A DNA stretch of 64,000 bases, from sequence record LC819007.1. One strand, 5' to 3'. The first letter of the stretch is position 1. Each line of letters begins with the position of its first letter. The notes beneath the pieces are model-generated. The model had not been told where the DNA came from. It ran no database searches and saw nothing but the letters and a program-made list of their open reading frames with translations. Below, one piece after another: positions 3,353 through 54,197 of this stretch. Position numbers and translations under genes: made by a program.

Positions 3353-4087
3353 TTAGAGTGCGCCAATGGTGGTGTTGCGAACGAATTCTTTCACCGCTTC
3401 CATGTTCAGTTGCGCGACGTACGCGGATATATTGCGTGCGCAAACTTCACCCGGAACTTGCATGCGGCCGATTAGAGCCGTCGTGGTGTCAAACGCTTTG
3501 CTGGGCTTGATCGACTTCGAACGTAATGCAACTCGCATAGTGTTACGATCCGATTCGTTCTCCGTACTTTCCGTACGCAGCCAGCGTCCGAATTGCAGAT
3601 TCGCTTTGGACACGAGGTTCTCGTGTGGGGTGCTCAGCGGTGCTGCAACATATCGGAAGATCTTGTTAAAAGGGGAATAAACCTGGAAGACACCGTGTTC
3701 TTCCTGCATCGCTTCACCACGTTGCGTAGCCACGCGACGCTTACCCTGACCGGCCAGCCATCCTTCCACGACACCGCGTGATTGGGTAGGCATCACAAAG
3801 AACTGGTACTGCGGATTCATATCCAACAGACGACGGAGCACCAGTGCCAACGCCTTGTAGCGCTGGTACGGTTTCTCACGGACGATGTGCTCGTAGAACT
3901 TCACGTCGCCACTCATCGTCGTGTAATACTGGTTCGTGGCAGGATGGTAGATCAGGATACCTTCCCATGCCTCCGGAATCTCGCGCTCCGGTACGCCGTT
4001 CACGATCTCGCGCAGGTAGTGCGCAATGTGAGACGGACGATCAAGTTTATCGTATTCGACAATCATGGCGATCAATAGTTGCGGCAT
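3353..4087 (-). CDS. hypothetical protein
   Basis: Long ORF in tiling; start uncertain (4087 or 4066). Confidence 0.7.
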   Translation of the reverse strand: MPQLLIAMIVEYDKLDRPSHIAHYLREIVNGVPEREIPEAWEGILIYHPATNQYYTTMSGDVKFYEHIVREKPYQRYKALALVLRRLLDMNPQYQFFVMPTQSRGVVEGWLAGQGKRRVATQRGEAMQEEHGVFQVYSPFNKIFRYVAAPLSTPHENLVSKANLQFGRWLRTESTENESDRNTMRVALRSKSIKPSKAFDTTTALIGRMQVPGEVCARNISAYVAQLNMEAVKEFVRNTTIGAL

Positions 4088-4124
4088 AGGCGGAAGGGTT
4101 TCCCCCTCCGACCGAATGCCAGGT

Positions 4125-5444
4125 TTAGAACCGGAAGACCTCCGCTTCACTCAGCAGTCGTTTCGACGAAGCCGAGATGACTTTGGAGATGTCCAGACCG
4201 AGGTTGTCGTACAGGTTGACCAACTGCCGAGCCACCCGCACGTGCTTGTTCAGATCCTTGCTGAGCAGGTCGTGGAACGTATGAAGCGCGGTGAAGAACG
4301 CTTCGAACGAACCATGTCCACGCGAGAGCGCGATGAACGCATTGCGCAAGTATTTCGACGGTTGCATCAGACGCACGTTGATCGTGGTGAAGTTCAGGTC
4401 GAGCTTCTCTTCCTTGAGGACTTCTTCCACAACCTTCAACGTCTTCGACGGCAACGACGAAGCCAGCGCTCGCACCAGCCACAGGATCACGTAGTAGTTC
4501 TCCGGCCGGATCGTGCGCGCCACGTGAGCGTACTCGACTCGCAGCGGATAGCTGCCACCTTCCTTCTTCGGCACAGCCACCAAGCGCGCCAATGCAGACG
4601 CGTCGAAGTTGTGCGTGACCTTGTCGCGTGCGTTGTGATGCGTCTGCGCGTGTTCTCGCGTGGCGGTGTAGTACAGCGCCAGTTCGCGCAGCAGGTTCTG
4701 CACATCCGGCGGCAAGCCGACGAAGTTGTCCGAGACGATCAAGCCGGTGTAGGAACCGAACTCGGTGCCCATCACCAGGTTCACGAAGTTAAACAGCAAC
4801 TCCTCGCGCGTAACCTGATCGAGGGCTCGCACGGCTGAGTCGACACGACGGAATTCGGATTCCAGACGATCGACGTCAAGTGCACCATGGTAACCACGGA
4901 ACTTCTCGAAGAGATTGCTCTCGCCCACGAACGAGTAGTACCCTTCGCTGACCAGTGCCCGGTACGCTTTGTTTTCAGCCACCGTGCTCTTCGGATGAAA
5001 GAGGCTCCCGAACCGATCGACGGAGTTATCAGGCTTGTTGTTGAGCACTTTGCCGAGATCGGCTTCGTGGTCGTGCAAGGCTTTCGTGACGCTATCAACG
5101 ACACGCGGAGCGAAGTCGTCGGGATCGAGGTATTCCTCGTAATCACCCGACTCATCGCCACGCATCTCTGCGGTGAGCATGCGGGTGAAAGCTTTGGAAA
5201 GCTTCTCGATGTCTTCCTCGGTTGGCGTGTCATCGTCGGTCTCCCTGGACGAGACGAGCTTGATGGGCTTAATCTCTTCCGGAGCCGGCACTCCGACCTG
5301 ATGGTCTTCCTTGCCATTCCCGTTGCCGGGACCTTGTGGTTTCTTTGCCATTGCTTCCTCCAAGAAGGCCGCTACTTCTTTCGAGGTCATCATCGGCACT
5401 CGATCGGTTTTACGGCGCTTCGCTTTGGGTGGTTTCTTAGCCAC
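4125..5444 (-). CDS. hypothetical protein with charged N-terminus
   Basis: 439-aa ORF, GTG start with GGAG RBS, strong GC3 codon bias. Confidence 0.8.
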   Translation of the reverse strand: MAKKPPKAKRRKTDRVPMMTSKEVAAFLEEAMAKKPQGPGNGNGKEDHQVGVPAPEEIKPIKLVSSRETDDDTPTEEDIEKLSKAFTRMLTAEMRGDESGDYEEYLDPDDFAPRVVDSVTKALHDHEADLGKVLNNKPDNSVDRFGSLFHPKSTVAENKAYRALVSEGYYSFVGESNLFEKFRGYHGALDVDRLESEFRRVDSAVRALDQVTREELLFNFVNLVMGTEFGSYTGLIVSDNFVGLPPDVQNLLRELALYYTATREHAQTHHNARDKVTHNFDASALARLVAVPKKEGGSYPLRVEYAHVARTIRPENYYVILWLVRALASSLPSKTLKVVEEVLKEEKLDLNFTTINVRLMQPSKYLRNAFIALSRGHGSFEAFFTALHTFHDLLSKDLNKHVRVARQLVNLYDNLGLDISKVISASSKRLLSEAEVFRF

Positions 5445-10320: not shown

Positions 10321-10680
10321 TTATGTTGGATCGATCATGAACTTCAGACCGGGAACGCGCAAAGCTTCATCCAGCGTCATGTTGGTATTCACCCCCATGG
10401 CGTTCAACACCTTGCGCATGTCCTGTTCTTCTGCTTCGTCCGCGACGGCTTCTTCATCCACCCACGGCTCAACCACTGTTTGTACCGTGACCTTCTGAGT
10501 GAACACCACACGTTGATTGCAGTGTTCGCAATACACCTGCCGCTGCGGATCGATCAACAACTCGATCACCTCTTCGGGCGCTGACTCCAGCGAGTAAATC
10601 AGGTACGCACCCTGACCTACTTGTTCACTGGTTTCATGCTTGCAATGCGGGCAGTCAAACTTCACGGTATCGTAAGCCAC
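10321..10680 (-). CDS. zinc-ribbon-like protein
   Basis: CPHC...CEHC; GTG start with GGAG RBS. Confidence 0.7.
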   Translation of the reverse strand: MAYDTVKFDCPHCKHETSEQVGQGAYLIYSLESAPEEVIELLIDPQRQVYCEHCNQRVVFTQKVTVQTVVEPWVDEEAVADEAEEQDMRKVLNAMGVNTNMTLDEALRVPGLKFMIDPT

Positions 10681-11910: not shown

Positions 11911-12282
11911 TTATTCTCCTTGTGCGCTAGCGGCGGCATTGAGTGCCTGATTGCGTGCCTGCCAGAACTTCTGTTTCTCCGCGAGACGGCCGAGCAGGTA
12001 GTCCTTCTCCGAGCGCAGGTTGCCGTTAGTGAGCAGTCGGACTTCCAGCTGGCTCGATTTCCACACCGGAAAAGCAATCGGATACTTGTCCTGGGTGAAC
12101 GGACTTGCAGTCTCGGCGACGCCTGCCATTGGCTGCATGATGTCGAAGACGATCTTTGCAACCGGTGGTGCGATCACACCATCGTCAGCGCCCGTACCGC
12201 TCAAGACCTTCTTGAGATCGACAATAGCAGCATCACGGCGGGCAGCCATCTGCACAGCTGAGTTGAGATTGTTGGTGACCAT
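11911..12282 (-). CDS. hypothetical protein
   Basis: 123-aa ORF with AGGAG RBS. Confidence 0.7.
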   Translation of the reverse strand: MVTNNLNSAVQMAARRDAAIVDLKKVLSGTGADDGVIAPPVAKIVFDIMQPMAGVAETASPFTQDKYPIAFPVWKSSQLEVRLLTNGNLRSEKDYLLGRLAEKQKFWQARNQALNAAASAQGE

Positions 12283-12312
12283 GGTTACTACTCCTGGGTT
12301 AGTTTGAGAGAA

Positions 12313-12690
12313 TTAACGTTCTTTCGCGAGACGGTCTTGCATCTCGGTAAGCTGATCAAGAATGAAGCTATTGACCTTGCGTAGATCATTCAGCGACATC
12401 GACGTGATATGCACGGTTACGCCGCGTCCGTAATAATCCCGATAGGCCATGGGAAACTTCGACTGCGGAAATGCACACTCTTGCACGTCACGCGGCAAGA
12501 GACGCGCAAGCTCCCGCATCGTTCGAGCGACAATCGCTGCCACTCGTGAACCCGTAAGTTCAAAGTTCTGCCCGACAGCCTTGTACGACATTCCTTCCAT
12601 TACCTGCTTGGTGATCGCGATACGCTTCTCCATCGTGGAGCCTTTGCGCATCATTTTCCAAGCGTATTCATCGAACAAACTTTCAGCCAC
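12313..12690 (-). CDS. helix-turn-helix DNA-binding protein (sigma region 4-like)
   Basis: QVMEGMSYKAVGQNFELTGSRVAAIVARTMREL resembles an HTH; GGAGG RBS. Confidence 0.6.
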   Translation of the reverse strand: MAESLFDEYAWKMMRKGSTMEKRIAITKQVMEGMSYKAVGQNFELTGSRVAAIVARTMRELARLLPRDVQECAFPQSKFPMAYRDYYGRGVTVHITSMSLNDLRKVNSFILDQLTEMQDRLAKER

Positions 12691-12701
12691 AATTCCTCCG
12701 T

Positions 12702-12854
12702 CTATTCAAACAGGCGAGAATACGGCGTGTTCACAAAGCCGGTGGGGTTACTGGAAACGTCAACCATTTCCGTAATCACGAAAGCAAACAGTGCTACCAA
12801 CAACAAACCTTTTATTAACCCGCGCACTCGACGGCGCTTCCAACCTGGTCTCAT
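12702..12854 (-). CDS. small membrane protein (MRPGWKRRRVRGLIKGLLLVALFAFVIT...)
   Basis: Manually translated 50-aa ORF filling the gap; basic N-terminus then hydrophobic helix. Confidence 0.55.
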   Translation of the reverse strand: MRPGWKRRRVRGLIKGLLLVALFAFVITEMVDVSSNPTGFVNTPYSRLFE

Positions 12855-12867
12855 CGTGCCTATCTCG

Positions 12868-13299
12868 TTATAGCGTCACGTCTAAGGGGTATCGCATAAA
12901 GAGCGACGCCAGCAAAGGCACCGGATCAGTCATGGGTTGCACCCCTACCTCATCAGCCTTCATCAAGGAGGGCCTGATGACACGCAGCATGATGTCATCG
13001 CCCGTTTTACGAGGCGGACCATCGAAATAGATGAACTCAGAATCTTCCCAGCCACGCGGAATCCTCATCTCATCCAGAATCTCGACCAACGGCTTGGACA
13101 AGAACGCTACGCAACGCAGGACATCTTGCGACGTCTCGATGCTGTACGAGTCTGCGTACTTGGCCAACGCTTGTTTCAGTTCTTCTGGACGAGCCTGCCA
13201 AGTCTTGTCGAGCCGCTCTTTCAGCGACCAGACAATAGGGATCGAACGACTATAACCGGGATACTCTCTAGCACCCGGAATCCATCGAATATTGGTCAT
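12868..13299 (-). CDS. hypothetical protein
   Basis: 143-aa ORF, AAGGA RBS. Confidence 0.7.
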   Translation of the reverse strand: MTNIRWIPGAREYPGYSRSIPIVWSLKERLDKTWQARPEELKQALAKYADSYSIETSQDVLRCVAFLSKPLVEILDEMRIPRGWEDSEFIYFDGPPRKTGDDIMLRVIRPSLMKADEVGVQPMTDPVPLLASLFMRYPLDVTL

Positions 13300-13398
13300 G
13301 ATTTCCTTAAATCTTACAGTCTGTAAGGGGATTTTGTGAGTTCACCCATCGTATGGAGCCCCTGCTCCAACTAACCTTTTTCACATGTGAGTAGAGCA

Positions 13399-14949
13399 AT
13401 GTCGGACGCAACGACCAACACCGTAAACCAAGAAGTTGACCCTGCCGCTGAAGTAGCAATCGCAGCTGATTCGGTCGACCAAAGCGTCCCCGCAGCAACC
13501 GAAGCAGCTCCTGTCGAGCAAGCTCCGGCTGTCGTGGAAGACCAAGCCCCTGCAGCCACCGATGAAACCGTCGCAGATGCGCCGGCTGGTGATGCTGTGG
13601 AAACCCAACCCGCACAAACGACCGATGCTCCTGCTGTCGAAGCAGAAGCGCCGGTTGCAGAAGCACAACCCGTAGCTGATGCTCCCGCCGAACAAGCAGA
13701 AGCACCTGCAGTCGAAGCACAACCCGCTGACGCAGCGCCGGTCGCTGTCGAAGCTGACCCGATCGCCGAACAGCCTGCGCAAGATCCGGCGCAAGCCGAG
13801 CAAGCCGCTCCTGCTGACGCTGCTCCGGCAGAACAAGCAGAGCAACCGGCTGCTGCGGACGAAGCAGCTCCGACGGTCACGGAAGAACCCGTTGTCGATA
13901 CCCCGGCTGAAGTTCCGGCCGAGCAACCGACGGAAGTGGCTCCGGTTGAAACGGCTCCGGTCGACGCTGCACCCGCAGCTGACACCCTGGCTGTCGAAAC
14001 GCCCGCAGAAGCTGCGCCTGTCGAGGCAGCACCTGTTGCTGACGCTCCGGTCGAAACGCCGGTCGCAGAAACGCCTGCAGACCAACCGGCCGCAGAAGCT
14101 CCGGCTCAAGATGCACCCGCTGTGGAAACGCCGGTCGCTGACGCGCCCGTCGACACTCCGGCAGCTGATGCTCCTGCGCAGGAAACTGCTGCTGATCCGG
14201 TTGCAGTCGACACTCCGGTGGAAACACCGGCAGACCCGGTCGTGGAAGTCCCGGCTGAACAACCTGCTGCAGATGCACCCGCAGCGGACCAACCTGCGGA
14301 GACTCCCGTTGCTGATCAACCTGCTGACCAACCTACTCAAGACGCTCCGGCAGATGCCGGTGTGGCGGATGGCCAAGGCAGCCAGGATTCGGCGCCCGTA
14401 GTGGAAACCCCGGCGGAAGATACGCCGGCTCAAGAAGGACAACAAGATGCAGCCCCTGCTCAAGGAGATGCACCTGCAGTTTCGGATAGCGGCGATGTCG
14501 CACCGGTCGTGGAACAAGATCCCGCGCCCGTTGCAGCTGACCCGGCTCCCGCAGCTGACGTACCTGCAACGACGGATACCCCGGCCGATGCTGACCAGAC
14601 GCAACCTGCACAAGGAAGCGACGCTGGCGATGCAGCGGCTCAAGATCCGGCACCCGTGACGGATACGCCGGCTGACGCTGGTACGACTGACCAAGGTTCG
14701 GCTCCGGCTGAATCGACGGACCCGGTCGAAACGGCTCCTGCTGATCCGGTTGCGCCGGAAGCACCGGCAGCTCCGGAAACGGTCGTCGTGGTGGTGAAGG
14801 AGGAAATCTCCCACAGCTTCCTCGAAGAGATCCGTCACGAGCTGACGAACTTCGAACACGAAATGATGTCTCGCGTGTTCGGAATGCTTTCGCGCATCAA
14901 GCCGCATCACCGCGACAAGCTGTTCGAGCATTTCAAGAAGTTCCGTTAA
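13399..14949 (+). CDS. very acidic Ala/Pro/Asp/Glu-rich low-complexity protein with short helical C-terminal domain
   Basis: 516-aa ORF from ATG 13399 (track uses GTG 13387); repeated APAVETPVADAP-like units; own terminator at 14977. Confidence 0.85.
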   Translation: MSDATTNTVNQEVDPAAEVAIAADSVDQSVPAATEAAPVEQAPAVVEDQAPAATDETVADAPAGDAVETQPAQTTDAPAVEAEAPVAEAQPVADAPAEQAEAPAVEAQPADAAPVAVEADPIAEQPAQDPAQAEQAAPADAAPAEQAEQPAAADEAAPTVTEEPVVDTPAEVPAEQPTEVAPVETAPVDAAPAADTLAVETPAEAAPVEAAPVADAPVETPVAETPADQPAAEAPAQDAPAVETPVADAPVDTPAADAPAQETAADPVAVDTPVETPADPVVEVPAEQPAADAPAADQPAETPVADQPADQPTQDAPADAGVADGQGSQDSAPVVETPAEDTPAQEGQQDAAPAQGDAPAVSDSGDVAPVVEQDPAPVAADPAPAADVPATTDTPADADQTQPAQGSDAGDAAAQDPAPVTDTPADAGTTDQGSAPAESTDPVETAPADPVAPEAPAAPETVVVVVKEEISHSFLEEIRHELTNFEHEMMSRVFGMLSRIKPHHRDKLFEHFKKFR

Positions 14950-14976
14950 GAAGTAAAAAGAAGTAAGCGGTAATTG

Positions 14977-15012
14977 AGCCTCCTGGACGCAAGTCCAGGA
15001 GGCTTTTATGCC
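14977..15012 (+). terminator. intrinsic terminator with GCAA tetraloop
   Basis: AGCCTCCTGGAC-GCAA-GTCCAGGAGGCT followed by TTTATGCCGC. Confidence 0.85.
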
Positions 15013-15112
15013 GCTATAGCAGGAAGTACAGCGCAATGCCAAGCAGAGGAACTACAAACCAGGCGTAGTGATACACCGTGCGCTTACTCTTCTCATCGCT
15101 CATGCTGGTCCC

Positions 15113-15346
15113 CTACTTCTTTGGAGGTGGAGGCGCATCGCTTAGCGCCGCAAAGGTTCGATACTCGTAACGGAACTTCTCCCGCAATCGCCCACGACCA
15201 CGCTTGGCATACTTCGGATCTTCCATCAACTTGTCGACAGCCTTATCAGCTATCTCCATGAACTCTTCTTCATTCATGCGCTTCTCCACGTAGAGAAAGC
15301 GAAGCATGTTGAAGAAGACGGTCGAGCTTGTCAGCATTTCCAGCAT
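15113..15346 (-). CDS. small hypothetical protein
   Basis: 77-aa ORF converging on the 14977 terminator; start uncertain. Confidence 0.55.
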   Translation of the reverse strand: MLEMLTSSTVFFNMLRFLYVEKRMNEEEFMEIADKAVDKLMEDPKYAKRGRGRLREKFRYEYRTFAALSDAPPPPKK

Positions 15347-15362
15347 GGCCGTCTCCCGGTAG

Positions 15363-15617
15363 TTACGTGCGATCGAAGTTGTATTCCGTCAACTGGATGT
15401 TACCCGAAGGCAACCACACCGGCCTTAGCGCCGGAGTGCGCGGCGCAACCGGGCCCTCGGGGTACATCAGCACGGGCCGACCGAAGAGGAGATACTCACC
15501 TTCCTGGATCGGTTCATCATGACCCTCTTTCCACTGACGCGCCTGCTCCAGACGCATCTTGAGTTCGCTCAGCTCCGGATCGCCCATCGGCACCGGCTGA
15601 GGAATCTCCAGCAACAT
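15363..15617 (-). CDS. hypothetical protein (MLLEIPQPVPMG...)
   Basis: C-terminal part of track ORF 15363-15728; overlaps the next ORF by about 100 nt. Confidence 0.45.
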   Translation of the reverse strand: MLLEIPQPVPMGDPELSELKMRLEQARQWKEGHDEPIQEGEYLLFGRPVLMYPEGPVAPRTPALRPVWLPSGNIQLTEYNFDRT

Positions 15618-15900
15618 GTTGCGGCACAAGTTGTTCGGAAAGGTCCCAGAAGGGGTGGATGAGGAAACGAGATTCGGTTTCATTGAGAACCCTTTGTTTT
15701 CCACGTTGGATGGTGATAAACGTTTCACCCTTGATCTGGCGATCGAGGAAGATAAAGTCCGCTTCCATCTCGATGGTGCGTTGAGATTTGGGAGGCGTCG
15801 TCGTAAGCAGTGTGTGTTCGCCGCGTAACGGGAAACGCATGCGCATATGCTCGAAGAGCGCTTTTGCAGCCTCGTACGCCGGATCAGCTTCAGGCTTCAT
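15517..15900 (-). CDS. hypothetical protein (MKPEADPAYEAAK...)
   Basis: GGAGGG upstream; starts in the 3' end of the 15890 gene; low-complexity tail in overlap. Confidence 0.5.
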   Translation of the reverse strand: MKPEADPAYEAAKALFEHMRMRFPLRGEHTLLTTTPPKSQRTIEMEADFIFLDRQIKGETFITIQRGKQRVLNETESRFLIHPFWDLSEQLVPQHVAGDSSAGADGRSGAERTQDASGAGASVERGS

Positions 15901-16696
15901 GCGTCTGTCCCTCCAGCCTGGCGAACATGATCGCGGTGTCACGTTCCGGACGATTCGGTGACAGAACCTTCAACGCAATACGCCAGAAGTGTTCGAAGCC
16001 GCTGTTGGCGTTTTGCGTGTCCCAACGGCTACGCGAACGGTGCACCAGACCGTCGGCGTTGCCCGGCTTGCGCTCTGGGTTGTTACGGGCCCGGAACGTC
16101 TGAAGCGCCAAGTGATACACGTTCGTCAGAGCGATATCATGCTTCGACAGGCCATGCAGGGCGTGCAGATGCCGCTCGGCCATACGGTTGACGTTGTTGA
16201 TGCTGCCATGCGCGAGTTGCGCATAGTTAGCCATCTCCATATCCGTGAAGTGATGACCGTACTGGCCGTACGTATCTTCCAACAGTGTCGAGTGGTGCGC
16301 CACCGGGAAGGCTGCTGGCCACGTAGCGACCGTATGGCTCGCTTTCAGGAAGTCGAGCACGCTGTTGTGGAGCGCGAAGGTGTCGTCGCTGTAGATCAGC
16401 AGCATGGCTGCGGCCATATAGCGAAGATCGGCGATCACTTCCTGTTCAGGCTGGGTCGCGTAAGCCTGCGTCTTCACGAAGCCATAGCCCTTTTGCTGCA
16501 GACCCGGCAGAAGGATCTCATCAGGGATCTGGTACTTCTGCTGGATGTCGCGGTATTCGGTCACGTCAGCGAAGCCGTCTTCGGCCACGAGCTTCTGAAG
16601 CTCGCCCAGCGCTTGCTCGACGATCGGGTTCGTGCGGGGAATCGGTTTAACCACTACGGACGGCGAAAGAAGGAGATTGGACATTTCTGGGTACAT
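15890..16696 (-). CDS. hypothetical protein
   Basis: Long ORF directly downstream of the promoter-like motif at 16778. Confidence 0.75.
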   Translation of the reverse strand: MYPEMSNLLLSPSVVVKPIPRTNPIVEQALGELQKLVAEDGFADVTEYRDIQQKYQIPDEILLPGLQQKGYGFVKTQAYATQPEQEVIADLRYMAAAMLLIYSDDTFALHNSVLDFLKASHTVATWPAAFPVAHHSTLLEDTYGQYGHHFTDMEMANYAQLAHGSINNVNRMAERHLHALHGLSKHDIALTNVYHLALQTFRARNNPERKPGNADGLVHRSRSRWDTQNANSGFEHFWRIALKVLSPNRPERDTAIMFARLEGQTHEA

Positions 16697-16777
16697 GGGT
16701 CGTAAGAGAGAATGGGGTGCGGAGATGCACTCGCACAATACTGGGTCGTGGTTAAATACGTCTCTGTGTTCAAGTTA

Positions 16778-16796
16778 GTAATATGTAGTTATTAAA
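16778..16796 (-). promoter_or_regulatory. putative early phage promoter (TTTAATAACTACATATTAC)
   Basis: Best match to repeated motif; contains TATTAC as in phiKZ early promoters; shares CAAGTTAGTRATATGTRGT with the 191-209 copy. Confidence 0.65.
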
Positions 16797-16809
16797 TCTT
16801 CGATTCCAG

Positions 16810-16831
16810 CATAAAGGCCCGGGTTTCCCCG
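16810..16831. repeat. 22-bp direct repeat copy 1 (terminator hairpin) CATAAAGGCCCGGGTTTCCCCG
   Basis: Identical to 17550-17571. Confidence 0.9.
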
Positions 16832-16852
16832 AGCCTAAACTTTGTAGCCATG

Positions 16853-17503
16853 TTAGATGGCAATCGGATTAAAGTTGTCTGTATAGCGCGCAACCTTACT
16901 GAAACGCATCCCGTTGAAATAACCTTTGATGTAATAACCGAAACCTGGCGTGCGACCAATCGTGCAGTACGTATCGGTGTAGTTCCCTGTGTTTGCTAAC
17001 GAACCTTTATTAGCGCCGTCAACGAAGAGGGTCTCAACACCGGCCAATCTGACTATCGCGACATGATGCCATCGATTAGCGGGAAATGCCGAAGCTGTCA
17101 ATTGCACCGTGTTGGCGTTGCCTCCGTCATACATCGTCAACTTACCAGCCAGCATCCGCAAGCGCGGAAACGAATTGACCGAATTAGCTTTTCCGTCGGT
17201 TATCTCTCCGTTTGAGTCGGAGATAAAGTAGATCCATGTTTCGACTGTAAAGTCGCCCGCTCCCATTGGCGTAAGCCCGCTTAAGACAAGCTGGGCTGTC
17301 GAGCCATCCATGTAACAACTGGACGTACCAAAAATGCTTTGAGCAGTAGAAAATGTGGAGGCTGTATTTGTGAACGTTGCCTTTCCGACCTGATCGGTGA
17401 AAGTACCGTCAAGACGAGAAAGGAACAACGTATCGCTATCCAGCTCCACTGTATTAGTGCCAGCTACGACCGGCCGTGCCGTAGCCAGTAAAGCTTCAAG
17501 CAT
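16853..17503 (-). CDS. LamG/concanavalin A-like lectin domain protein (putative virion decoration or receptor-binding)
   Basis: GDFTVETWIY, NRWHHVAIVR.....TLFVDG, IG......Y.KGY.NG.RFSK.ARYT.NF motifs; AAGGGAG RBS. Confidence 0.85.
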   Translation of the reverse strand: MLEALLATARPVVAGTNTVELDSDTLFLSRLDGTFTDQVGKATFTNTASTFSTAQSIFGTSSCYMDGSTAQLVLSGLTPMGAGDFTVETWIYFISDSNGEITDGKANSVNSFPRLRMLAGKLTMYDGGNANTVQLTASAFPANRWHHVAIVRLAGVETLFVDGANKGSLANTGNYTDTYCTIGRTPGFGYYIKGYFNGMRFSKVARYTDNFNPIAI

Positions 17504-53012: not shown

Positions 53013-54197
53013 ATGATGTCTAATTTGTTTACTGATGTCTGGGGGAGGACATTCACCCAGGGTGGAACGGTAAACGGTGTAGATGACGTGTGGGCGCGCA
53101 GTCCGGTGGGTAACCCGAACACTGCAGTTACTGAGACGTTGTATGGTATTAACCACCGCAGTCTGAGCAACAGTATTCCCATCAACAAGGACTACTATGG
53201 TCTGGCCTTTTTCACCAAGCCGGATTTGCGCTTCACCACGGACAATCTCATTAAGCTCCGTAAGTTCGCACCCATGCTGACTTCACGTGAAACCTCGCTA
53301 CCGCGCGCAATTCGCGCGATGCTGGATTTTCGCCACAACACTCATAATGAAGATAGCTACAATTGTGCCCTGATTGATCCGAAGCAGATCTTCATTCCGA
53401 TCCTGACCAACCAACTGGTGTCGATGTCGGGCTGGCCCGACGTCGAAGCACCGACCTTCAAGAGTGATGCAGGTGTCTACGGCGAGGAACATTCGTTCGT
53501 CGACGGGATCACAGACATCTACCGGACGTGGGACATGACGGCCAACTTCCGGAACATTCCCGGCGATCCTATCACGGCGATGTTCTGGTACTGGATCTCT
53601 TATGCTTCAGCGGTGTTTGAAGGCACCCTGACCCCATACGCAGATAACATTGCGGAAAACGTGATCGACTACCAGACTCGGATCTACCGGGTGGTGTTGG
53701 ATTCGAGCAAACGCTTTGTTCAAAAGATTGCGTGTACGGGCGCAGCGTTTCCGACGGGTGTACCGATGGGGATGTCGTTCAACTTCGAGACCGATACCCC
53801 GATCAACCGGTTGGACCAGATCCCGATCTCTTTTCGCTGCATCGGCGCCGAGTATCTGGATGACATGATCATCCACGATTTCAACAAGGCGGTGGTGATT
53901 GGCAACCAGGATATGGCGGATGACCAACGCGATGGCGCGGGCCTCGTCAAGGTGCCGTACGAGTTCATCTACCTCTTTAACTATCTGGGCTATCCGCGCA
54001 TCAATATCCAGACCTTTGAGCTGGAGTGGTGGGTGTACAACAACACCTATCAGGAGATGACGGGCAGCTCAGGTGATGGGGCTTCGATGCCGGACGTGGA
54101 TCTGGCGGATGTGGACTCGGGCGATCTGAATACCTACACGGGCATCCCGATGACTGGCACGTCCTCGACCTCACCGGGTGGCGTCCCGAACAAATAA
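53013..54197 (+). CDS. putative virion structural protein (phiKZ gp88-like by synteny)
   Basis: Start MMSNLF after AAGGA; divergent from the 52985 gene. Confidence 0.65.
   Translation: MMSNLFTDVWGRTFTQGGTVNGVDDVWARSPVGNPNTAVTETLYGINHRSLSNSIPINKDYYGLAFFTKPDLRFTTDNLIKLRKFAPMLTSRETSLPRAIRAMLDFRHNTHNEDSYNCALIDPKQIFIPILTNQLVSMSGWPDVEAPTFKSDAGVYGEEHSFVDGITDIYRTWDMTANFRNIPGDPITAMFWYWISYASAVFEGTLTPYADNIAENVIDYQTRIYRVVLDSSKRFVQKIACTGAAFPTGVPMGMSFNFETDTPINRLDQIPISFRCIGAEYLDDMIIHDFNKAVVIGNQDMADDQRDGAGLVKVPYEFIYLFNYLGYPRINIQTFELEWWVYNNTYQEMTGSSGDGASMPDVDLADVDSGDLNTYTGIPMTGTSSTSPGGVPNK

Follow-up and report, generated by a model that had tools for sequence, protein, structure and literature searches.

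We analyzed a 64,000-nucleotide stretch of sequence record LC819007.1, the phage FLC4-3B (hereafter the window; record coordinate = window coordinate + 186000), and found that gp215 (BFM94042.1), a coding sequence annotated as "hypothetical protein", is a genuine, conserved and unusual gene. It occupies 13399..14949 on the plus strand (516 codons and a stop, with ATG at 13399 and the stop codon ending at 14949) and encodes a long acidic chain, predicted to be disordered and free of basic and aromatic residues, followed by a short, predicted helical C-terminal domain. This confirms the observation at the center of a preliminary description of the same DNA, which had placed the gene at 13399–15012; the start was correct, but that end takes in the terminator beyond the coding sequence. 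The gene product is an accessory protein of one phage clade, and it most likely acts through its bulk physical properties and not by catalysis.

The polyanionic Pro/Ala-rich region spans residues 1–466 (13399..14796, plus strand). A composition count bore out the earlier claim that it contains no Lys, Arg, His, Cys or aromatic residue, the first Lys standing at residue 467 and K, R, H, C, F, W and Y all being absent before it. The chain is made of A, P, V, D, E, T, Q, G and S, together with two N, two I, one M and one L, giving a net charge of -99 over residues 1–466 and an isoelectric point of about 4.05 for the whole protein. With residue frequencies taken from the window's 74 other annotated proteins, a stretch of 466 residues without K, R, H, C, F, W or Y would have a probability of about 1e-52. 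The second-longest run free of K and R among the window proteins is 176 residues.

The acidic region had also been described as built of repeats, which was not upheld: Tandem Repeats Finder gave only three tiny arrays, and we rejected true tandem repeats in gp215. The region is instead of low complexity with evenly spaced prolines and acidic residues, both of which show an autocorrelation peak at a lag of five residues (z = 5.5 and 3.6, respectively) and are depleted at lags 1–3. None of the 76 prolines of gp215 falls in a Pro-Pro dipeptide, the commonest placement of proline is two residues after an acidic residue, and acidic residues lie about 4.7 residues apart (about one in five). AlphaFold2, run on the whole protein, assigned no secondary structure to residues 1–465, with a predicted local distance difference test score (pLDDT) below 50 over most of them, in agreement with the disorder proposed previously. 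The nucleotide composition of this region is also atypical. GC content at third codon positions (GC3) is 0.45, vs 0.78 in the 3' end of the same gene and a window median of 0.73, and CAA makes up 89% of the Gln codons, compared with 31% elsewhere. Whole-gene GC3 is similarly low in the orthologues from RP12 (0.44) and from an uncultured phage (0.49; both introduced below). The low GC3 may be compensation for GC-rich first and second codon positions, or may reflect selection at the mRNA level.

The chain ends in a predicted helix-turn-helix domain (residues 467–516; 14797..14946, plus strand), identified by AlphaFold2 and by conservation. In the model of the whole protein there are helices at residues 472–498 (14812–14892) and 502–515 (14902–14943) and nothing else, and modeling of the last 87 residues from a two-sequence alignment gave the same two helices with pLDDT above 90. 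The helical tail of about 50 residues that had been read from the sequence was therefore confidently predicted as helical, but as two helices split by a Lys-Pro-His turn. An alignment of this end of the protein from the three lineages in which the gene is found has 57 columns, of which 26 do not vary; four His and the inter-helix Lys-Pro-His-His-Arg turn are among them. The domain is presumed to be an anchor or oligomerization module because it is the only part of gp215 predicted to fold. Membrane targeting by the last helix was considered and rejected, as this helix is not very hydrophobic and RP12 does not have the basic residues at its end.

FLC4-3B is a 291-kb jumbo myovirus that infects R. 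pseudosolanacearum; its nearest described relative is RP12, and it is phiKZ-related (PMC11530567; PMC5468394). The sister phage FLC1-1B shares 98.9% identity with it over window bases 12000–17000 and carries a gp215 orthologue of 98% identity. Further orthologues are RP12 ORF203 and RP31 ORF200 (phrog_35695; 575 aa, mutually identical, at 3396–5123 in our sequences L002 and L004), and a 494-aa protein of an uncultured phage that was found twice with identical sequence, in Logan contig SRR26075508_44790 (L008) and in the 283-kb IMG/VR uncultivated viral genome 3300049460_000312 (L009). The reading frame is intact in FLC1-1B, RP12, RP31, L008 and L009, and the genomes fall into three lineages, FLC1-1B/FLC4-3B, RP12/RP31 and the uncultured phage. 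In all three the gene lies between a gp214-family and a gp219-family gene, always on the inverted strand, and the orthologues also resemble gp215 in their flanking signals (upstream element and terminator) and in both protein parts, the acidic chain without K or R and the helical C-terminal domain. They differ from it in length (494–575 aa), are all annotated as hypothetical, and in RP12 and RP31 lack the last two residues of gp215. The N-terminal part of the RP12/RP31 proteins contains an extra insert of about 30–45 residues with Tyr, Asn, Leu and beta-prone strings, not found in the FLC and uncultured lineages, which may be an added binding element.

Sequence comparison suggested that the two parts of the protein evolve in different ways. 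Between FLC4-3B and the uncultured phage, at a synonymous divergence (dS) of about 0.55–0.70, the ratio of non-synonymous to synonymous substitution rates (dN/dS) is 0.10 over the C-terminal 55 codons, with 14 synonymous and 6 non-synonymous codon differences, and 0.35 in the acidic region, which also has 58 gapped columns. On these figures purifying selection on the last 50 residues is strong. In the acidic chain, the aligned sequences indicate that sequence and length change but composition is kept (evenly spaced Pro, roughly every fifth residue acidic, and none that is basic, aromatic or Cys), the K/R-free run measuring 444, 466 and 528 residues in the three lineages. The best-conserved portion of the acidic region is its N-terminal 24 residues (13399..13470, plus strand), according to the codon comparison of FLC4-3B with the uncultured phage. 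The first 23 codons contain two differences, both synonymous (codons 10 and 21), leaving the residues identical; the first amino-acid change is at codon 24, and the N-terminus is partly retained in RP12. AlphaFold2 predicted no helix or other structure there, and the N-terminal DNA is itself unusually conserved. Because synonymous change is low in this segment, a constraint on the RNA is inseparable from one on a peptide motif.

gp215 forms a unit of one gene on the inverted strand and has a conserved upstream element and a terminator to itself. From the window start to 53 kb all annotated genes are on the minus strand except gp215 and gp218 (70 aa, 15616–15828), the next plus-strand genes begin at 53088, and the sign of the AT skew flips over 12–16 kb, as expected for an inverted gene. 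The claim of a lone convincing plus-strand gene in the first 52 kb needs qualifying for the second annotated plus-strand coding sequence, although gp218 is probably not a real gene, since gp217 on the other strand reaches across it, as judged from a homologue in a related phage. gp217 is probably 121 aa long (15363–15728, minus) rather than 84, its upstream extension aligning with a 127-aa homologue in L008.

The conserved upstream element (13348..13368, plus strand) consists of a TATG at 13352–13355 followed by a 5-bp GC-rich stem-loop at 13355–13368. The three lineages agree in 14 consecutive bases, TATG included, and in the two arms of the stem, but not in the loop; the hairpin has a folding energy of -8.1 kcal/mol (z = -3.7). 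In phiKZ, TATG marks late promoters, used by the non-virion RNA polymerase (nvRNAP), with initiation at the G (PMC4666361; PMC12809450), and RP12 has nvRNAP subunits (PMC5468394). By this analogy we infer a promoter function, the element being a candidate start site for a phage RNA polymerase; were transcription to start at G13355, the mRNA would carry a stable hairpin at its extreme 5' end. A search for further copies that would define a promoter class found none, with one copy per genome. Farther upstream lies a TTAC, also invariant, that looks like the core of phiKZ middle promoters but stands at a different distance; TATG is of the late type. A 7+1+7 inverted repeat (13313..13327) also lies in the 99-bp divergent control region between gp214 (minus) and gp215 (plus), just upstream of the gp214 ribosome-binding site. 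It is an exact palindrome save for its center base, is identical in L008 but not palindromic in RP12, and is a possible operator.

Downstream, a phiKZ-type intrinsic terminator (14976..15018, plus strand) comprises a 13-bp stem, a 4-nt loop and then TTTTATGCCGCTATA. The stem (14976–15005) folds at -26.7 kcal/mol (z = -7.6), and 3 of its 13 pairs show compensatory changes among the three lineages, in keeping with the strong terminator that the preliminary description had assigned to the gene. It escaped a simple consensus scan, since its tail reads TTTTAT and not a long T run. The window has 13 copies of the 7-base tail string TTTATG(C/T), and 12 are intergenic, at 1693, 15005, 57187 and 57205 on the plus strand and at 1657, 8046, 16815, 17555, 29141, 35073, 44710 and 50018 on the minus strand; in the contexts listed each lies directly 3' of a GC-rich inverted repeat, and the string often continues CGCTATA. 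Sixty-one terminators with a stem-loop and a TTAT motif have been mapped in phiKZ (PMC10914365). The gp215 terminator and the 11 other intergenic sites fit that pattern of a GC-rich stem-loop with a TTAT-containing tail, with no notable difference, so that the terminator is ordinary for this phage group. The tail also contains TATG, the mark of phiKZ late starts, and terminator and restart site may be coupled.

These results bear on whether gp215 encodes a functional protein at all, or is either a gene in decay or a frame left open by chance in low-complexity DNA rich in GC. Several long open reading frames (ORFs) do overlap it in other frames, and the Logan gene caller cut the orthologue in L008 (8700–10400) into three wrong-frame ORFs, even though the 494-aa frame is intact. 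Against this stand the intact frame in five genomes of three lineages, the low C-terminal dN/dS, and the conservation of the start region and of the terminator with its compensatory pairs. The most prominent competing frame, a 553-aa antisense ORF, was rejected as a gene: it is a shadow of gp215, in codon register with it, and stays open because the sense frame lacks TTA, CTA and TCA codons. An artefact is extremely improbable, and we regard this reading as effectively excluded.

Profile and similarity searches indicated that gp215 belongs solely to its own orphan family. Scans of the whole protein and of its last 65 residues against Pfam-A with hmmscan gave no PopZ match at E ≤ 1, in line with the earlier statement that the likeness to this polar organizing protein was an analogy and not a claim of homology. 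The one match at this cut-off was to Extensin_1, sub-threshold and compositional. The Pfam PopZ model presumably represents the PopZ C-terminal region; a sequence relationship to PopZ was not detected by Pfam or NCBIfam profiles, and no direct comparison with a PopZ sequence was made. NCBIfam and PADLOC scans of gp215 returned no match. Among PHROGs, gp215 matched only phrog_35695, its own orthologue family, with E 1.6e-9 for the whole protein and E 5.4e-12 for the last 65 residues, which aligned to the last 57 positions of the profile.

Wider searches led to the same place. Queried with the C-terminal region, a word index of 5.8 billion proteins gave no match; queried with the whole protein, it gave only a compositional match, to an actinobacterial Rho. 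When the C-terminal domain was compared by phmmer, exhaustively, with 1.84 billion representatives, the sole match was a fragment belonging to a close relative (an uncultured phage); searching with this domain, as had been proposed, therefore recovered only the protein's own family or close relative, whether by phmmer or by PHROG profiles. The gp215 family was not found in back-translated pattern scans of GTDB genomes or of JGI metagenomes, and the same kind of scan of IMG/VR found only RP12 itself and one 283-kb uncultured phage. Burkholderia phage FLC9, whose RNA ligase is closer than RP12's, gave no tblastn match, and no K/R-free acidic ORF was seen in the 41-kb RNA-ligase neighborhood scanned. 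Because the searches found RP12-type relatives only, we regard the gp215 family as an accessory gene of one Ralstonia-phage clade. Literature searches for an acidic disordered jumbo-phage protein found none described.

Structure-based searches were likewise negative. The best match in a PDB profile search, to CnrX/NccX, was non-significant (E 0.39, 14 bits, over 31 residues), and a periplasmic metal-sensor hairpin of this kind was rejected on that E value, the lack of a Pfam match and an N-terminus without a signal-peptide-like hydrophobic stretch. Foldseek with the C-terminal model found no PDB match, and nothing in BFVD at E ≤ 0.001 (best E 3).

Given a polyanionic chain joined to a single folded module, we tentatively propose that gp215 is a spacer or brush, anchored or oligomerized via its C-terminus and acting in the infected cell; we hold this as one possibility and not as the probable answer. 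The helical hairpin would be the sole specific contact, docking on a partner surface or self-associating. The acidic chain would be an expanded, self-repelling and non-sticky polyelectrolyte, without the aromatic residues and Arg that would make it sticky and without the Lys and Arg that would neutralize it from within, its regular Pro spacing blocking helix and sheet and its regular charge spacing maximizing self-repulsion. Extrapolating the fit for PopZ linkers (PMC9512792), 466 residues would have a radius of gyration of about 15 nm, although the charge and Pro content of gp215 are somewhat lower. With the hairpin tethering or bundling them, such chains would make up an entropic spacer or brush of negative charge, which could keep nucleic acids and large particles off the coated surface, or hold two things apart. 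If the conserved N-terminal 24 residues were a second binding end, the protein could act as a long flexible tether. We would expect it in the cytoplasm of the infected cell and not in the virion; in a nucleus-forming phage its place could be the shell, assembly sites or another surface.

The RP31 orthologue is absent from the published list of 32 RP31 virion proteins, obtained from gel bands with LC-MS/MS. This offers no support for an ordinary virion fiber or decoration protein, the identity that the preliminary description had set against its own reading, yet the method is nearly blind to a protein of this type. The negative is weak because the first 528 residues contain no tryptic site, and such an acidic protein is expected to stain poorly with Coomassie. 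Besides the weakness of this negative, several points count against a tethered spacer. gp215 and its orthologues are known from their genes alone; the hairpin was modeled as a monomer, so that its oligomerization, like an anchor target, is putative; the temporal class of the promoter, and hence the timing, is ambiguous between TTAC and TATG; and the conservation of the N-terminus may lie at the level of RNA rather than peptide.

The same charge could serve another purpose. In eukaryotes, prothymosin-alpha binds histone H1 in a disordered, high-affinity complex, and gp215 might similarly be a polycation sink or loose nucleic-acid mimic that sequesters basic host proteins or polyamines, the hairpin adding valency or targeting. 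Candidate targets would be histone-like or nucleoid proteins, ribosomal proteins and DNA-sensing defense proteins. The net charge of -99 and the strict exclusion of K and R in three lineages speak for this reading, as do the autonomous transcription unit and two features typical of host-takeover genes, the restriction of the family to Ralstonia-phage RP12 relatives and the placing of the gene among small genes of unknown function that have early-type promoter-like motifs. The linear charge density, however, is low, at about one carboxylate per 4.7 residues and far below that of DNA; the known DNA mimics Ocr and ArdA are compact and folded and gave no match; no PADLOC or anti-defense family was matched; a 50-kDa chain would be a costly decoy; and Ala/Lys/Pro-rich host targets would be hypothetical. 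We consider a sink unlikely, though not negligible. A DNA-mimic anti-restriction protein of the Ocr or ArdA kind was rejected on the lack of a Pfam or PADLOC match, the predicted disorder and the acidic spacing.

The promoter-like motifs in this part of the window are of a CATAT type. An 8-base version is found in minus-strand intergenic sequence at 205, 8015, 16785, 31483, 32928, 34551 and 35016, several copies being preceded by an AT-rich stretch, and it is confined to the first 35 kb (the small-gene block), without copies in the structural block. By analogy with phiKZ, these are candidate early promoters for the virion RNA polymerase.

gp215 could alternatively be an assembly or virion protein: a space-filling acidic scaffold whose helix-turn-helix binds coat protein and which is lost before maturity, or else a capsid fiber, decoration, internal or ejected protein. 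P22-type scaffolding proteins are acidic and largely helical, with a C-terminal helix-turn-helix, are encoded beside the coat gene and are absent from mature virions. gp215 resembles them in being acidic with a C-terminal helix-turn-helix and in the absence of its orthologue from mature RP31 virions. Its invariant upstream TATG fits a late, nvRNAP-type start, and it contains 14 [S/A/G]-x-E strings, the cleavage motif of the phiKZ prohead protease. It differs from the scaffolding proteins in that its body is predicted to be disordered and not helical, in that the structural block is over 20 kb away and its neighbors are small genes of early type, and in giving only non-significant scaffold matches in fold searches (E > 3). 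It was, moreover, not found in other chimalliviruses that share capsid genes, and a fiber or internal protein would have to reckon with the negative, if nearly blind, RP31 virion analysis. We therefore think an assembly or virion role rather improbable.

An internal protein draws some support from gp259 of the same phage (47683–49941, minus; 752 aa), which has the window's second acidic low-complexity stretch (residues 178–353, K/R-free, Ala/Asp/Gly-rich, with 50 acidic residues) and matches the internal-head-protein PHROGs 8282 and 6807, whereas gp215 does not. A phiKZ-type inner-body or internal head protein was rejected for gp215, which matched neither PF12699, the inner-body fold family (bioRxiv 10.64898/2026.04.21.720040), nor any other Pfam family, and no PHROG but phrog_35695.

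Two further features stand near gp215. An unannotated 29-codon ORF (15014–15103, minus), convergent with gp215 and with its stop inside the terminator tail, would encode a short peptide that is hydrophobic and membrane-like; L008 has a called homologue of 29 aa in the corresponding position (10336–10425). gp220 (16853–17503, minus; 216 aa) carries a concanavalin-A-like lectin/Laminin_G_3 domain (E 2e-16) and stands alone among small genes, while its lectin domain is also found within large baseplate and virion proteins of other phages.

Nucleus-forming jumbo phages reorganize the bacterial cytoplasm, and the factors known so far (chimallin shell, PhuZ and import factors) are folded proteins. 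FLC4-3B gp309, encoded beyond the limits of the window, is a chimallin homologue, with an alignment of about 590 residues (E 1e-24) to the protein annotated as the PhiPA3 nuclear shell; RP12 and RP31 proteins likewise match chimallin/nuclear shell protein, and RP12 has been grouped among the chimalliviruses (bioRxiv 10.1101/2024.03.21.585822). Judged by the chimallin homologue it encodes, FLC4-3B is a nucleus-forming phage. A conserved 50-kDa polyanion free of basic residues would, if it acts as we propose, be a different type of tool, working by charge and excluded volume, and its 50-residue folded C-terminus is a tractable handle for finding partners. As a scaffold or decoration protein gp215 would be an ordinary finding; as an organizer or a sink for host proteins it would be of high interest. 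Proteins of this type are nearly invisible to trypsin-based proteomics and are mis-framed by gene callers, and may be systematically missed. Low-complexity GC-rich genes are easily mis-annotated because they have long shadow ORFs in several frames.

The known system closest in layout is PopZ. In Caulobacter crescentus its acidic Pro-rich linker is 78 residues long, with a mean of about 93 across the Caulobacterales and a narrowly conserved length; its C-terminal oligomerization domain has three helices over about 76 residues, and deleting any one of them markedly cuts condensation (PMC9512792). With a disordered region of twice the length, PopZ saturates at a higher concentration and partitions less, and chains of the linker type expand past the denatured-state limit as self-repelling polyelectrolytes (PMC9512792). 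On this model gp215 would be an organizer whose C-terminal helices self-assemble, whose acidic chain tunes fluidity and whose N-terminal peptide recruits clients, the outcome being a hub without a membrane, which would keep out ribosomes or DNA or serve to mark sites of assembly. The likeness is the same three-part layout of a short conserved N-terminus, an acidic Pro-rich, predicted disordered middle and a helical C-terminus (PMC9512792), with an evenly patterned charge per residue of -0.21 vs -0.28 in PopZ, in a nucleus-forming phage and hence in a cell whose interior is reorganized.

The differences are larger. The disordered region of gp215 is 466 residues against 78, about six times as long, varies from 444 to 528 across lineages, contains 16% Pro against 29%, is Ala-rich and lacks the sticky aromatic and Arg residues; there are two C-terminal helices over about 45 residues and not three; the N-terminus is predicted to be non-helical; and gp215 is encoded by a phage whose host is a betaproteobacterium. 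Three of the four PopZ family features that could be tested (family match, three helices and linker length) are absent from gp215. By analogy with the PopZ data, in which a longer linker raises the saturation concentration and loss of a helix reduces condensates (PMC9512792), the length, non-stickiness and two helices of gp215 suggest that it would not readily condense by itself. Of the PopZ-like architecture originally described, the acidic Pro-rich, predicted disordered segment and short helical C-terminus therefore stand, as a loose likeness of layout only, and on this analogy a PopZ-like scaffold or condensate function is not favored; an organizer of this kind is doubtful. About equally doubtful is the broader idea of a phage-made cytoplasmic organizer, in which the polyanion would self-assemble or dock by its hairpin, perhaps with the conserved N-terminal peptide for a second binding end, and form a charged exclusion layer or hub around phage structures, or strip host basic nucleoid-type proteins, as an independently evolved counterpart of PopZ or prothymosin.

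Parallels to a chain of this kind also exist among eukaryotic proteins. Prothymosin-alpha and the side-arms of neurofilaments are long chains of high charge, and what they do depends on that charge and on the volume they exclude, not on a fold. They are unrelated to gp215, which differs from them in its lower charge density, its regular Pro spacing and its folded C-terminal module.

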